Assembly: GCA_001179505.1 (NCBI GenBank)
Contig: CDMY01000240.1
Coordinates: forward strand, 1 to 64,000
Direction: 5' to 3'
DNA length: 64,000 nucleotides
Origin: Vitrella brassicaformis CCMP3155
Taxonomy: Eukaryota > Protista > Chromerida
This document shows, piece after piece, positions 2,776 to 63,221 of this stretch. A program made the position numbers and the translations under genes. Numbering within the stretch: position 1 is the stretch's first letter; each line of letters begins with the position of its first letter. Below the pieces are notes generated by a model. That model did no database searches. It worked only from the letters and a program-made list of their open reading frames with translations, and was not told the DNA's origin.

Positions 2776-3882
2776 TCACCCCACCACCCTCCCCCTGTCG
2801 ATGACGGCACTCCCGAGCTCGAATGGCCGCAGCAGACGGCGGGCGGCACCAACCGACACAGAGTAGCGCTGGGCGAGCGGCTGGGACCGATCGGCAGCAG
2901 ATGGCTCGGTCGTGTGCAGACTGATCGAGCCATATCCCCCCGTCTCAACCGACACGTGGGCGGCGACGGTCTCGTTGGGCCGAAAGCAGCTCACAATCAC
3001 ACGACGATTGTCCCTCGGATACGCAGAACCCAGATTGCCCCCGTCGTAGCGCCAGTCGGCAGTAATGCCCTGATCCTCTGTCATGTTGTCGGTCGTCAGC
3101 AGACGGCGATGACGAGCGTCGTCACCATAGCCGATGCCTGCCGACAGCACCCGCCTCTCGCTCACCCAATCTTCATCGTACCACCAGCTGAGCAGCATGT
3201 CGAGCAGGAAGGCCGAGAATGAGCGCACGAGATAGTTGCTCCAGCGGATGACGGGATCGGTCCGCTTGTAGCCCTCAGCATAGCGATGGCCGCCCGGCAG
3301 ATCACCCAACGGCACCACACGAAACGTCCAACCGCCAATCCGATAGTGGCCGTTGTCGGCTCGGCGCAGCTCCAGGCTGGTCCCTTTGTGTGTGAGCTGG
3401 TGGCCGATGATCTTGTAGATGGCCATCGCCAGGGGCAGCTGGTGGAAGGCCGTTGCTGTGGGCAGCGAGGAAGCCGACAGCCGGAGGGGCCGCGTGGCGT
3501 CAGCAGGGGTTAGCCGATAGATGAAGGCCAGCCGAAGGAACCGCCCCATTGCCCGCCACTCCTCGCCACTGCCCCGCTTCAGCAGATAGACCACCTTCAG
3601 GCCGCCCTCCAGATCATCGTCAATGTCGAAGGCCAACACGTCCGCCAGGCCGAGACGACTGATGTGCTCATCCACGCGGCGCCTCACCTCATAGAGCATC
3701 GTGTCGACATCATAAGGATCGCTGTTGCTGATCTGTGAGCGAAAAGCGGCTCGTCTGTTGGGGTCAGTGGACATGGCCATGCCGGCCATCTTTCTGATTG
3801 CGATGCTGCGCAGTGGTGGGACTGCCGGCGGGGCGGTGTGGCCATTGGGAGGGGGAGGCGGAGGCTGGGAAGAGGACGCCAT
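2776..3882 (-). CDS. Family A, subtype A1, hypothetical protein (368 aa, intronless)
   Basis: Intact ORF sharing LADVLAFDI..D.E.GLKVVYLL.RGSGEEW, FRVVPLG.LPGGH.YAEGYKRTDPVI, SFSAFLL, NETVAAH and TTEPSAADR..VIDRG.VVG with 8 other copies in the window. Confidence 0.8.
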   Translation of the reverse strand: MASSSQPPPPPPNGHTAPPAVPPLRSIAIRKMAGMAMSTDPNRRAAFRSQISNSDPYDVDTMLYEVRRRVDEHISRLGLADVLAFDIDDDLEGGLKVVYLLKRGSGEEWRAMGRFLRLAFIYRLTPADATRPLRLSASSLPTATAFHQLPLAMAIYKIIGHQLTHKGTSLELRRADNGHYRIGGWTFRVVPLGDLPGGHRYAEGYKRTDPVIRWSNYLVRSFSAFLLDMLLSWWYDEDWVSERRVLSAGIGYGDDARHRRLLTTDNMTEDQGITADWRYDGGNLGSAYPRDNRRVIVSCFRPNETVAAHVSVETGGYGSISLHTTEPSAADRSQPLAQRYSVSVGAARRLLRPFELGSAVIDRGRVVG

Positions 3883-38608: not shown

Positions 38609-38908
38609 NNNNNNNNNNNNNNNNNNNNNNNNNNNNNNNNNNNNNNNNNNNNNNNNNNNNNNNNNNNNNNNNNNNNNNNNNNNNNNNNNNNNNNNNNNNN
38701 NNNNNNNNNNNNNNNNNNNNNNNNNNNNNNNNNNNNNNNNNNNNNNNNNNNNNNNNNNNNNNNNNNNNNNNNNNNNNNNNNNNNNNNNNNNNNNNNNNNN
38801 NNNNNNNNNNNNNNNNNNNNNNNNNNNNNNNNNNNNNNNNNNNNNNNNNNNNNNNNNNNNNNNNNNNNNNNNNNNNNNNNNNNNNNNNNNNNNNNNNNNN
38901 NNNNNNNN
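38609..38908. other. Assembly gap (300 N)
   Basis: Run of n. Confidence 1.
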
Positions 38909-44650: not shown

Positions 44651-46153
44651 CTATCTGCCCACATCCCGCGACACAAACGAGTTGCCCTGCTGCTGCTGCT
44701 GCTGCTGTTGCTGCTGTAATGGGTCGAATCTGTTCTGCGCCCGTGTCATCAGCCGGCTCCCGCCCCTCATGGGCCCTGCTGCCGACGCCTGCTGCTGCTG
44801 CTGCTGCCCCTGCCCCTGCCCCTCGGTCGTTGGCTGCTGCACCGATCGCTGATGGTTCATGGGGCTGCCGACGCCCCTGTTGGTGGTCTGGTGGTCGTTG
44901 TGGTGGATCTGTGTGGACTCGGAGGCATAGCCATACTGATGTGTGTGGGTATGAGGGGGTGGGTGGCCGGGCTGCGTGTGCACTGGGTGGGAGAAGGGAT
45001 TGGGATTGGCGGGGAGGGGGTGTGGNNNNNNNNNNNNNNNNNNNNNNNNNNNNNNNNNNNNNNNNNNNNNNNNNNNNNNNNNNNNNNNNNNNNNNNNNNN
45101 NNNNNNNNNNNNNNNNNNNNNNNNNNNNNNNNNNNNNNNNNNNNNNNNNNNNNNNNNNNNNNNNNNNNNNNNNNNNNNNNNNNNNNNNNNNNNNNNNNNN
45201 NNNNNNNNNNNNNNNNNNNNNNNNNNNNNNNNNNNNNNNNNNNNNNNNNNNNNNNNNNNNNNNNNNNNNNNNNNNNNNNNNNNNNNNNNNNNNNNNNNNN
45301 NNNNNNNNNNNNNNNNNNNNNNNNNAGGGTGGCCGTTTCGTTCCTGTCGACGAAGGAGGGGGGCGGGGGCGGCCAGGCTGATGTGAGTGTCGACTGCGTG
45401 ACAGTGTCCGCCTCGCTCGCGCAGTGGCCACCGTCGGCATCGTCAGCCTGGCACCATAAAGGCAGAGAGAGAGGGAGGGAGGGAGGGAGGGAGAGAGATG
45501 TGCACAGAGTCATTCTATGTGTGTGGGATCTCCTCTCCTCAGTGCTGACTGACCTCGGCTGACTGCGGTGGGTACTTCCTGAGCTTGAACGAGACGCCGT
45601 CAGGTATGAGGAAGGCTCGCCGGTTGCTCTCGAGGTGGCGCTTGACGTGCCCCCAGGCCTTGTTGCTGAGGTGCTTGCCGCCGCCCACACGCTCCTTCTC
45701 CGCGTTGTGGTGCACCTCGATCGCTGTCACCATACCTGCACACACACACACACATATACACACACATACAGAGTCAGAGACGTCTCTCCCTCTCCCTCCC
45801 TCTGTGTGTCCCTCCCTCCCTGTTTGTGCGTACCAGAAAAGGGCGGCGAGTAGGGGACGGCTTCGATTCGGTTGCACTCCTTGAGCTCGGCCGTGGATGC
45901 GGCGGAGCTGCTGTCGAGCCAGTTGATGATGCGGCCCCAGGCGTCGCACGGCAGCTGGAAGTGCTTCCCGTTCTTCTCGGCGTGGACGTACTGACACACA
46001 CGCACAGGCGCACGATAGACACACACGAGGGATGGCCGTGACATCAGAAAGAGAGCAACGTGTACCCTGCCTGTGTGTGTGTGTGTGTCCATCTGTTCTC
46101 ACCTGTGTAGCTTGTGTCGTGGGAGGGGGTTGCTGCGCAGAGGACGGCAGCAT
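44651..46153 (-). CDS. Hypothetical Gln/Pro-rich protein, multi-exon, interrupted by the assembly gap
   Basis: Putative exons MLPSSAQQPPPTTQATQ|YVHAEKNGKHFQLPCDAWGRIINWLD..PPFS|GMVTAIEVHH..RKYPPQSAE|...polyQ...SRDVGR* with GT-AG borders. Confidence 0.45.
45026..45325. other. Assembly gap (300 N)
   Basis: Run of n. Confidence 1.
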
Positions 46154-49313: not shown

Positions 49314-49563
49314 GGGAGGAAGGGAGAAAGGGAGGGTGACGGTCGAGGACGTTGGGTGATCGATGTGGCAATCAGACGAGTCGAGGGCGATTGGCACCAT
49401 AATCCATTCATTCACTCACTAATGTGCAGTCAACAGAGTCCCATAACAACCAGTGAGACATCCGATGCGAAGCAGAGCCGACTCTTATCAAGAAACAGGC
49501 ACGTCACACCTTTGAAAGCTCTGGTCGGTCGACATGCCGGAACACCTATCAAGTCACCACCCC

Positions 49564-50594
49564 TCACTGCAGCACCGTCCCCCTTTCAATGACGTCACTC
49601 TCGAGACCGAATGGCCGAAGCGCACGGCGGGCGGCACCAACCGACACAGTGTAGCGGTCGGCGAGCGGATGAGATCCATCAGCTATAGGTGCCTCGGTCG
49701 TGAACAAATACTTCCCAACCACAGGTGAGCAGCGATGGTCTCGTTGGATCGCCAGCCGCTCACAATGACACTACGAAAAACAATCGGATTCGCATCATTC
49801 AGATTGCCCCCATCGTAGCGGAAGTCGGCGACGATGCCCAGACCCTCTGTGATGCTATCGGTCAGCAGCACACGGCCATAGCGAGGGTCACCGCGGCCGA
49901 TGTCTGCACGCAGCACCATCCTGCGGCCCATTCCCTCTCCATCGGGCCACCAGAGGAGTCGCCTGTGCAGCAGGAATGCCGAGAAGAAGGGAAAGAGATT
50001 GAGGCCGCAGCGGATGACGGGGTCGGTCCGCTTGTAGCCCTCAGCATAAGGATGCCCGCCCGGCAGCTCACCAAGAGACACCACACGAAACGGACCAGAA
50101 TTGCCGATCCAATAGAGTCCGTTGTCATCGGCTTGCTGCAGCGCCAGGCTGGTCCTTCTGTGTGTGAGCAGGTGGCCGAACAGCCGATAGATTGCCATCG
50201 CCAATGGCAGCTGGTGGAATGCCGTCCTGCTGGGAAGGTGGGCTGTCAGCCACTGAGCCGACAGCACCAGGGGCAGCCCATTGGCAGGCGTCAGCCGATA
50301 GATGGCGGCCAGCCGGATGAACCGCCCCATCCCAGGCCACTCGTTGCTGCCCTGCTCCAGCACATAGGCCGCCCGCAGCACACAGCTGAATGGGAGAGGG
50401 GCGGTGCGGTCGATGTCGATGAGGCCGGTGAGAGAGTGGCGGGCGAGGGAGCCGACGATGCGCTCCACCAGCAGAGCGGCGGTCACCAGAGCCGCCTTCA
50501 CCCGGCAGGTCGCTCGGACACAGACCGCCTCATGGACGAGAAGGGACGGCAGAATGCGCCTCCGCCACAGGTCGTCGGGCACCAAATCAGACAT
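49564..50594 (-). pseudogene. Family A, subtype A2, with a 10-nt deletion near 49705 that frameshifts the tail
   Basis: gggaagt|atttgttcacg versus gggaagtggctacatctatctgttcacg in the 62162 copy. Confidence 0.8.
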
Positions 50595-51219
50595 CGTCAC
50601 GACTCAGTCAGTGAGCGCATGACAACAACCTTCCTGACAGCACACAGGACACACACATGGAAGCAGAAATAGAGTGCATTTCGAATCGGCTTGCGTGGTT
50701 CTTCTCTCACCCTTCACAAGTTGACCACGTGCAGTGCAGGAGGCACAACGACGCCGGCCTGTGTGATCATGAAGCCTCTGTCTGCTCACTCGGGAAGATC
50801 AAGATGAACAAGGCAGACGGCGACTCAGACCTGCCACAATCACACACAGAGACCACACAGGCTGTCATTGCTGATGTCATAAGGCCCTCCTGGGTGCCCT
50901 CGCTCACCTCAATGCGTCAGATCAGCGCCGGTCAGAGAGATGACGGCGACATCTGTGTTGATCGATGTCATCACAGCAGCTCTTTGATCACCTCCCAGGC
51001 ACTCCACGCCGCCCGTGCAAAAAGGAAAGGCAAACGATCTGCACGCCAAGCTCGCAAAGCACGGTTTCGGACCCTCTCAAGGGACTCATCGGAGGTGAGA
51101 GGGCAGCAACAGAGACAGATGAAGCATCGGAGTGCCGCAAACCGATCCCTCTTCGTGTGTCTGTTGCGTGGCTGCAGATCTGTTGTGTGATTCCTCGCTC
51201 AGGCCTCAGGACACTCCCG

Positions 51220-60401: not shown

Positions 60402-61538
60402 TCACCCCGCGCCCATCACCCTCCCCCTGTCGATGACGACACTCTCGAGATCGAATCGCCGCAGCACAGCACACCACAGGGGCATTGACACGGGGAAGCG
60501 GTCGGAGAGCGGATGAGTCCGATCAGCAGCAGATGGCTCGGTCGTCCACACAGTGATGTAGCCATTTCCGACCCTCAGATGGGTAGCGACGGTCTCGCCG
60601 AATCGCCAGCCGCTCACAATCACACGACGACAGTCCCCCGCATCAGCAAAATTCAGACTGCCCCGGTCGTAGCGGTAGCCGACAGCGATGCCCTGATCCT
60701 CCGTGATGTTGTCTGTCCTCAGCAGGCGGCCATAGCGTGGGTCGTCACGGCCGATGTGTGCTTCAAGCACCAGCCTGTGATCCACTCCCTCTTCATCCGA
60801 CCACCAGAAGAGCAGCGAGTCAATCAGGAACGCCGAGAATGAGACGAAGAGATTGCCGCCGCATCGGATGACGGGGTCGGTCCGCTTGTAGCCTTCGGCA
60901 TACGGATGGCCGCCCGGCAGCTCACCCAATGACACCACACGAAAGGTCCACACATTGCCAATCCGATAGGCCCCATTGTCGGCTGGCTGCAGCGCCAGGC
61001 TGTGTGTGTTGTATGTGAGCAGGTGGCCGATGATTTTGTAGATGGCCATAGTCAGGGGCAGCTGGTGGAAGGCCGTTGATGCGGGCAGTGCGTCGGCCGA
61101 TAAACGGAGAGGCCGAGTCGCATTGAGAGGGGTGAGCCGGTAGATGAAGGCCAGCCAAAAGAACCGCCCCATCGCCCGCCACTCCTCGCCACTGCCCCGC
61201 TCCAGCACATAGACCGCCTTCAAGCCGGCCTCCACATCACCGCCAATGTCGAAGGCCAACACGTCCGCCAGGCCTCTTTGACTGAGGGCCTTGTCGATGT
61301 GCTGCTGGACGGCGTTGAGCAGGGTGCTGTTGACGGTCTCCGCAGTGTGGCCCAGCAGCTCCTGTTGCCGAGTGCGGGTGGCGAGCTGCGAGCGGAGAGC
61401 GGCTCGTCTGGCATAGTCAGTCGCCATGGCCATGGCGGCCATCTTGCTGATGGGCAATGACAGGTCAAAGAGGTCGGCGGGCTGGAAGAGGGCAGGGCCG
61501 GCGGGACGGGACGAGGGCGCCGCACCAGTGGGCTGCAT
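60402..61538 (-). CDS. Family A, subtype A1 (MQPTGAA variant), intact (378 aa)
   Basis: N-terminus nearly identical to 51220-52356; the C-terminal loops differ. Confidence 0.8.
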   Translation of the reverse strand: MQPTGAAPSSRPAGPALFQPADLFDLSLPISKMAAMAMATDYARRAALRSQLATRTRQQELLGHTAETVNSTLLNAVQQHIDKALSQRGLADVLAFDIGGDVEAGLKAVYVLERGSGEEWRAMGRFFWLAFIYRLTPLNATRPLRLSADALPASTAFHQLPLTMAIYKIIGHLLTYNTHSLALQPADNGAYRIGNVWTFRVVSLGELPGGHPYAEGYKRTDPVIRCGGNLFVSFSAFLIDSLLFWWSDEEGVDHRLVLEAHIGRDDPRYGRLLRTDNITEDQGIAVGYRYDRGSLNFADAGDCRRVIVSGWRFGETVATHLRVGNGYITVWTTEPSAADRTHPLSDRFPVSMPLWCAVLRRFDLESVVIDRGRVMGAG

Positions 61539-62161: not shown

Positions 62162-63221
62162 ATGTCTGATTTGGTGCCCGACGACCTGTGGCGGAGGCGC
62201 ATTCTGCCGTCCCTTCTCGTCCATGAGGCGGTCTGTGTCCGAGCGACCTGCCGGCCGAAGGCGGCTCTGGTGACCGCCGCTCTGCTGGTGGAGCGCATCG
62301 ACGGCTCCCTCGCCCGCCACTCCCTCACCGGCCTCATCGACATCGACCGCACCGCCCCTCTCCCATTCACCTATGTGCTGCGGGCGGCCTATGTGCTGGA
62401 GCAGGGCAGCAACGAGTGGCCTGGGATGCGGCGGTTCATCCGGCTGGCCGCCATCTATCGGCTGACGCCTGCCAATGGGCTGCCCCTGGTGCTGTCGGCT
62501 CAGTGGCTGACAGCCCACCTTCCCAGCAGGACGGCATTCCATCAGCTGCCATGGGCGATGGCCATCTACAAGATCATCGGCAATCTATCGGCTGTTCGGC
62601 CACCGGCTCACAGACGCAGGGAACAGCCTGGCGCTGCAGCAAATCGACGACAACGGACGCTATCGGATCGCCGGCGGTTGGCCGTTTCGTGTGGTGCCGT
62701 TGGGTGAGCTGCCGGGCGGCCATGGCTATGCTGAGGGCTACAAGCGGACCGACCCCGTCATCCGCTGGCCGGCCCTCCTCTTCCCCTCATTCTCGACATT
62801 CCTGCTGGAGAGGGTACTCGTCAGGTGGTGCTATGGTAAAGGAGCGGGCCAGAGGAAGGTGCTGCGTGCAGTCATCGGCCGTGATGATGCTCGGTATGGC
62901 CGTGTGCTGCTGACCGATAGCATCACAGAGGGTCTGGGCATCGTCGCCGACTTCCGCTACGATGGGGGCAATCTGAATGATGCGAATCCGATTGTTTTTC
63001 GTAGTGTCATTGTGAGCGGCTGGCGACCCAACGAGACCATCGCTGCTCACCTGTGGTTGGGAAGTGGCTACATCTATCTGTTCACGACCGAGGCACCCGT
63101 GGCTGATCGGTCTCAGCCGCTCGCCGACCGCTTCCCCGTGTCGGTTGGCGCCGCCCGCCGTCTGCTGCGGCCATTAGGTCTCGAGAGTGACGTCATCGAC
63201 AGGGGGACCGTGGTGGGGTGA
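62162..63221 (+). pseudogene. Family A, subtype A2, frameshifted by a 19-nt insertion at 62563-62581
   Basis: atggc[catctacaagatcatcggc]aatctatcgg versus atggcaatctatcgg in sibling A2 copies. Confidence 0.85.

Follow-up and report, generated by a model that had tools for sequence, protein, structure and literature searches.

Interlocus gene conversion and micro-conversion, in which synthesis-dependent strand annealing is accompanied by template switching, are known, e.g., from CYP21A2/CYP21A1P, and Drosophila gap-repair products combine copying with end joining. Mosaic genes are formed in the VSG repertoire of trypanosomes, and gene expansions of rapidly evolving F-box adaptors are known from plants and nematodes. 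Mosaic formation has also been described for the var genes of Plasmodium (commentary, PMC4270491). Templated insertions at double-strand-break junctions, associated with polymerase theta or synthesis-dependent microhomology-mediated end joining, have been reported in several studies (PMC7165422, PMC2895639, PMC9303309).

The locus described here lies in a 64,000-base stretch of DNA (C240:1-64000, referred to as the window) from Vitrella brassicaformis CCMP3155. This organism is a free-living photosynthetic relative of apicomplexans. One A2-type copy of a large gene family carries a 19-base tract in the state of its A1-type paralogs, followed directly by the A2 version of the same codons. This site, referred to as the scar, combines features of ectopic gene conversion with features of templated-insertion end joining. 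Products of the latter process likewise show a copied insert of about 5 to 30 bases, a microhomology of a few bases, intact flanks, and a frame-breaking outcome. However, the template in these products usually lies tens of bases from the break in cis, whereas the template of the scar is the homologous position of a paralog, located on another scaffold or no closer than 1.5 kb. With ectopic gene conversion the scar shares a short paralog patch in an unchanged recipient, in a family with many in-register patches and mosaic blocks. Classical conversion is in register and keeps the length, whereas the right end of the scar was resolved 19 bases out of register.

The var and VSG families are similar in that they are large, exchange segments at short blocks of identity, and place a conserved module beside a hypervariable one. 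They encode parasite surface antigens, and their recombinants are reported to be mostly in frame, whereas the Vitrella family is F-box-like and of intracellular type, belongs to a free-living alga, and yielded a frameshifted product, with no sign of any programmed process. The F-box expansions of plants and nematodes resemble it in copy number (more than 100), in the abundance of pseudogenes, and in the combination of a conserved F-box-like helix bundle at the N terminus with a variable C-terminal domain. Unlike these, the Vitrella family has no Pfam F-box match, its C-terminal domain has no recognized counterpart, and Skp1 binding is putative. The scar is a fresh example of a kind of mutational footprint that is already known, tidy but ordinary. 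If confirmed by reads, it would be a natural repair event caught midway between gene conversion and end joining. Since the original codons are kept next to the copied ones, template type, entry point, and 3-base exit point would be directly readable.

The gene family and the 19-base surplus

Genome-wide searches were performed in the 72.7-Mb assembly of V. brassicaformis CCMP3155, which comprises 1,064 scaffolds. The A1 and A2 genes belong to one family with at least 115 matches genome-wide, and about one quarter of these matches contain internal stops. A1-type genes comprise about 370 codons; those of the A2 type have about 345 and a different N terminus. Apart from Vitrella proteins, the only relatives of the family found were MMETSP transcripts and a small number of short environmental contigs. 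Scaffold gaps, two runs of exactly 300 N (window positions 38609 to 38908 and 45026 to 45325), are present among the family copies. The site of the scar was aligned in nine copies of the window and then in about 100 copies fetched genome-wide. The coordinates of the features are listed in Table 1.

Table 1. Features of the scar copy and of related family copies (window positions unless a scaffold or locus is named)
Feature	Position	Strand	Evidence or remark
Scar copy (A2-type family gene, frame broken by one lesion)	62162-63221	+	Both sides open, in different frames; locus of public model P0056
Stretch with 75-mers common to 2 to 7 other copies, end of the homogenized 5' module	62430-62544	+	75-mer comparison
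15-base motif GCCATCTATCGGCTG, upstream copy	62450-62464	+	Motif search; recurs at 62580-62594
79-base GT..AG "intron" of the public model	62494-62572	+	P0056; skips the frameshift, AG from the inserted tract
28-mer with two further exact copies in the genome	62554-62581	+	Exact sequence search
19-base surplus, A1-type version of the next 19 bases	62560-62578 (equally 62563-62581)	+	Alignment; absent from the other aligned copies
10-base cassette CAAGATCATC, diagnostic of A1 type	62569-62578	+	Cassette census
GGC, 3-base overlap at the out-of-register junction	62579-62581	+	Sequence and alignment
Native A2 unit (AIYRLFGH codons), backbone continues	62579-62603	+	Nearly identical at 25 A2 sites of the genome
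Block of 132 bases with perfect identity to the copy at 49558-50600	62895-63026	+	Within 16%-diverged 3' region; permutation 0/20,000
Homologous site in A1 gene 2776-3882, candidate donor of the 19-mer (among at least 7)	3403-3430	-	Exact match
Homologous site in the head-to-head A1 neighbor (gene 60402-61538)	61026-61053	-	Matches 18/19 of the insert
Copies with the 111-base duplication	L104 285-1424 (C350:102684-103823); L032 480-656; L034 1058-1232	minus (L104)	

The surplus of 19 bases was present in this copy only, among about 100 aligned family copies, and it is the sole lesion of the gene; both sides are otherwise open. tblastn splits the copy into two frames, and the upstream frame ends with a stop at 62705 to 62707. 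An earlier sequence-only reading of this DNA had attributed a frameshift to 19 surplus nucleotides, and the two tblastn frames agree with this. Because GGC is present at both ends, the surplus can be placed at two equivalent positions. After the tract, the native A2 unit GCA ATC TAT CGG CTG TTC GGC CAC is found at 62580 to 62603, and the claim that the A2 version follows directly is correct. When the surplus is removed, the backbone reads GGCGAT joined to GGCAATCTATCGGCTGTTCGGCCAC, which is the exact native A2 27-mer of four other copies; the same 27-mer with one or two changes occurs in 21 further copies genome-wide. Since the backbone minus the surplus is native A2, no sequence was lost, and the event is a pure insertion. 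In the flanks of the scar, identity with sister copies is about 98%. The junction 19-mer occurs only once in the 72.7-Mb genome.

Comparison of the insert with the adjacent native unit revealed differences at 7 of 19 bases, and all seven are in the state of the K cassette (A1 type). This result, with flanks that have diverged so little, indicates that the tract was templated by a paralog and did not arise by slippage and drift. The description of the tract as A1 type holds for these seven bases, but it is too broad for the 28-mer as a whole, of which only 10 bases (62569 to 62578) are diagnostic; the GGCGAT at its left belongs to the A2 backbone as well, and GGCCATCTA was found in many A2 copies in the cassette census. 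This census, done on alignment columns, counted 16 RL and 2 K cassettes in strict A2-upstream copies and 38 K and 16 RL cassettes in A1-upstream copies. The earlier reading had conceded that it would fail if many A2 copies natively carried the KIIG variant; the K-type cassette is native in only one or two of about 20 A2-type copies. The observation is real: it comprises an insertion, its A1-type identity, an intact backbone, a 3-base overlap, a unique junction, and a single lesion. The pure insertion, the A1-state bases, and the overlap of exactly GGC support the earlier interpretation as a footprint of inter-paralog exchange joined at GGC. The scar copy is most likely a young pseudogene.

The 28-mer is, as had been claimed, an exact match to the reverse complement of positions 3403 to 3430, with an expectation of zero chance matches. 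A third exact genomic copy was detected at C350:87919-87946. For the 22-mer there are four possible donors, and the 19-mer of the insert is exact in at least seven family copies among those fetched. The nearest near-match (18 of 19 bases) is the neighboring gene about 1.5 kb away, and the exact matches lie on other scaffolds or at a distance of 59 kb or more. The cassette was found nowhere else within the scar gene, i.e., there is no template close in cis. The A1 neighbor carries AAA and not AAG, as originally noted, and has two mismatches in the flanks in addition. A more distant donor had been proposed from this difference. The neighbor does mismatch at 62572, but the proposal depends on that single base, and at least seven copies match at 19 of 19 bases. 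In view of at least seven exact copies and a neighbor matching at 18 of 19 bases, no donor can be named; a search for the best donor of the 28-mer yielded the third exact copy but no single candidate.

A scan of metagenome contigs with the junction 24-mer gave no match, and no relatives of the 3' half of the scar copy were found in the metagenome contigs scanned. The two half-ORFs, looked up by exact product, had no match. A word search with the frameshifted tail retrieved only P0090, a different broken copy. P0090 (L033, C377:76200-77600) is an A2 copy that lacks 2 bases of a CA-rich run shortly downstream of the hinge described below, and this loss leads into the same alternative frame as in the scar copy.

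The hinge and the proposed repair route

The mean pairwise identity among 17 A2 copies is 92 to 94% up to about position 62545 and 66 to 80% beyond it. This drop in identity places the scar at the edge of a homogenized 5' module. The hinge at this edge is a recurrent exchange point. An in-register chimera at C350:87295-88080 (L031 484-1530, minus strand; P0046) passes from an A2-type 5' module through the K cassette into an A1-like continuation and contains the exact 28-mer. In-register RL patches are present inside A1-type genes, e.g., in L003. A 111-base in-frame, out-of-register duplication, whose first unit is A2 type and whose second unit is A1 type, was found in three diverged copies (L032, L007/L104, and L034), and one copy with this duplication is an intact 379-codon ORF. 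Another copy (L056 1007-1072; C1000:203800-205800, minus strand) contains a perfect 33-base (11-codon) in-frame tandem duplication that starts at the codon of the scar. The search for similar out-of-register duplications suggested by the sequence-only reading was thereby successful, and in-frame out-of-register products have persisted in the family. Exchange at the hinge is relevant to the diversification of mosaic gene families in this apicomplexan-relative lineage.

Further features of the region were recorded. L032 additionally carries a 1-base deletion. A 19-base periodic slippage site was considered and dropped, as the raw sequence of L056 contains the 33-base duplication and not a second 19-base one. 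In each A2 gene the motif GCCATCTATCGGCTG (codons AIYRL) is present in two copies, about 111 to 130 bases apart. The upstream copy may in turn have served as the template of the A2-type RL cassette.

One sister A2 copy, located at 49558 to 50600, is the closest relative on either flank of the scar. Compared with this copy, the scar copy shows 3 mismatches in 154 bases upstream, and the sister copy is the best or second-best match downstream. The perfect 132-base block shared by the two copies in a region of 16% divergence (p < 5e-5) is a segmental conversion tract, formed between copies that are 12 kb apart and in opposite orientation (49558-50600 on the minus strand). Because the closest relative is the same on both flanks, a short patch in one A2 backbone is both a simpler reading and a better fit than a crossover between two genes. 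The scar consists of a patch in paralog state with recipient-type sequence on both sides. It is not an in-register replacement of unchanged length; both versions are retained, with a surplus of 19 bases.

The junction would also result, with no patch at all, if a K-cassette A2/A1 hybrid like the chimera at C350:87295-88080 had undergone one unequal crossover with an ordinary A2 gene. Such a hybrid exists, with the exact 28-mer and A2-type upstream sequence, and it gives the best overall local score for 62400 to 62581; in addition, the 111-base hybrid duplications show that out-of-register crossovers happen. However, over the 50 bases upstream, the present-day hybrid and the scar copy disagree at three additional diagnostic sites, and one closest relative for both flanks (49558-50600) is not predicted from two different parents. 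A crossover of this kind is considered unlikely.

A patch copied into an A2 backbone would be explained by the following steps. A DNA break would have occurred in an ordinary A2-type gene just after GGCGATGGC. The broken 3' end would then have paired with the homologous site of a K-cassette (A1-type) paralog, with identity over up to 9 or more bases. About 19 bases would have been synthesized through the K-I-I-G codons before the end left the template, and the released end would have been joined to the other broken end via GGC instead of re-annealing in register. The expected product would be a pure 19-base templated insertion with tandem paralogous units, A1 type first and A2 type second, and a shifted frame. 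The insert is identical to a template elsewhere in the genome, and the flanks of the recipient are intact with a short microhomology. It is quite probable that a broken end copied a short stretch of a paralog and was subsequently joined out of register. Of this explanation, we infer from the product that a break and a strand invasion took place and in which order the steps followed. A two-step history (duplication, then micro-conversion) or a single unequal crossover with an unseen hybrid parent would give the same sequence.

Assembly, splicing, and slippage as alternatives

The junction might have been created during assembly or gap closure, if contig ends, one of which had drifted into a K-cassette path, were butt-joined by GapFiller or IMAGE at the edge of the repeated module. 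The assembly was generated with velvet (k = 75), followed by SSPACE, GapFiller, ICORN, IMAGE, and REAPR (PMC4501334). The scar lies about 35 bases beyond the stretch with 75-mers present in 2 to 7 copies, and shared 75-mers starting at 62430 to 62470 make a contig boundary nearby plausible. However, all 75-mers across 62480 to 62700 are unique among the fetched copies, and a velvet path of k = 75 through the junction therefore needs real reads. The private bases 62542, 62553, and 62605 stand together with the junction within single 75-mers, and de Bruijn or overlap-based merging requires more than a 3-base overlap. The two 300-N gaps elsewhere on the scaffold would fit a gap-closure error, but they are the only gaps, and no N is present near the scar. 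Sequence searches gave no independent match to the junction, which is compatible with an artifact; on the other hand, the left part of the junction (the A2 5' module with its private bases and the K cassette) occurs nowhere else in the assembly, and genuine out-of-register products exist in three diverged copies. An assembly error is improbable.

The public gene model P0056 (326 aa) was reproduced exactly by joining 62162-62493 to 62573-63221. The interval left out has GT..AG borders and a frame-restoring length. If it were a genuine intron, the gene would be unbroken: the new acceptor AG (62571-62572) would come from the inserted tract, 79 bases that were formerly coding would be spliced out with restoration of the frame, and the scar would have been rescued by the birth of an intron. 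The splice is used exactly in P0056, the models of other frameshifted copies (P0090 and P0069) are truncated and not rescued, and the gaps between tubulin exons, roughly 70 to 120 bases, suggest that introns of such sizes exist in the genome. RNA-seq hints were, moreover, fed into the gene prediction for this assembly (PMC4501334). The interval 62494-62572 corresponds to 26 codons that are translated in the model of the sister copy, P0069, and in all intact paralogs. These codons include the nearly invariant residues L120, A134, and Y136 and confidently modeled helices, all of which would be lost by splicing. The same GT context is present in every A2 copy and remains unspliced in their models, and a pyrimidine-rich tract before the AG is absent. 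Gene predictors routinely bridge frameshifts with invented introns. We regard the intron of P0056 as a frame-bridging prediction artifact and its birth from the scar as decidedly improbable. The public model bridges the frameshift by a doubtful intron, and the family needs pseudogene-aware annotation. A tiny real intron spanning just the 19 bases was rejected, as GT..AG borders of fitting length are not present.

Slippage could have made a perfect 19-base tandem duplication, the first unit of which was later overwritten by an in-register A1 micro-conversion. Each step has a parallel in the family: a perfect 33-base tandem duplication begins at the same codon in L056, and short in-register cassette swaps are known. 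An unconverted 19-base duplication, however, was seen in no copy, either in the about 100 aligned copies or in the genome-wide junction search, and two rare events at one spot would be required where one suffices. Drift alone, in place of conversion, cannot yield seven of seven differences in the A1 state. Slippage as the first step is the least likely of these explanations and very improbable. Simple replication slippage was dismissed, as the two units are not identical and the 7 of 19 bases that differ are all A1 type.

Predicted fold of the family proteins

A Pfam profile scan of the A1 and A2 proteins detected no domain and no F-box hit at E ≤ 5. The structure of an A2 protein (P0039) was modeled with AlphaFold2 using a 60-sequence family alignment, and the model was confident (pLDDT 89, pTM 0.86). 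Residues 1 to 44 of the model (e.g., window positions 62162 to 62293) superpose on at least 10 Skp1-bound F-boxes with an rmsd of 1.5 to 2.2 Å and Z scores of 4.2 to 5.5, which are middling values for a small domain. The Atlas lead to an F-box-like N terminus was weak (score, 0.86), and a Foldseek search against the PDB gave nothing below E = 0.1. For the remaining approximately 300 residues, no convincing solved counterpart was found. The scar maps to helix 131-142, directly ahead of the beta-rich domain, which is variable. On the basis of the model, the family may consist of F-box-type adaptors with a variable recognition domain. Two family members on other scaffolds, P0019 and P0072, are fused to a CBM_25-like carbohydrate-binding domain, with a match just under the Pfam cutoff.
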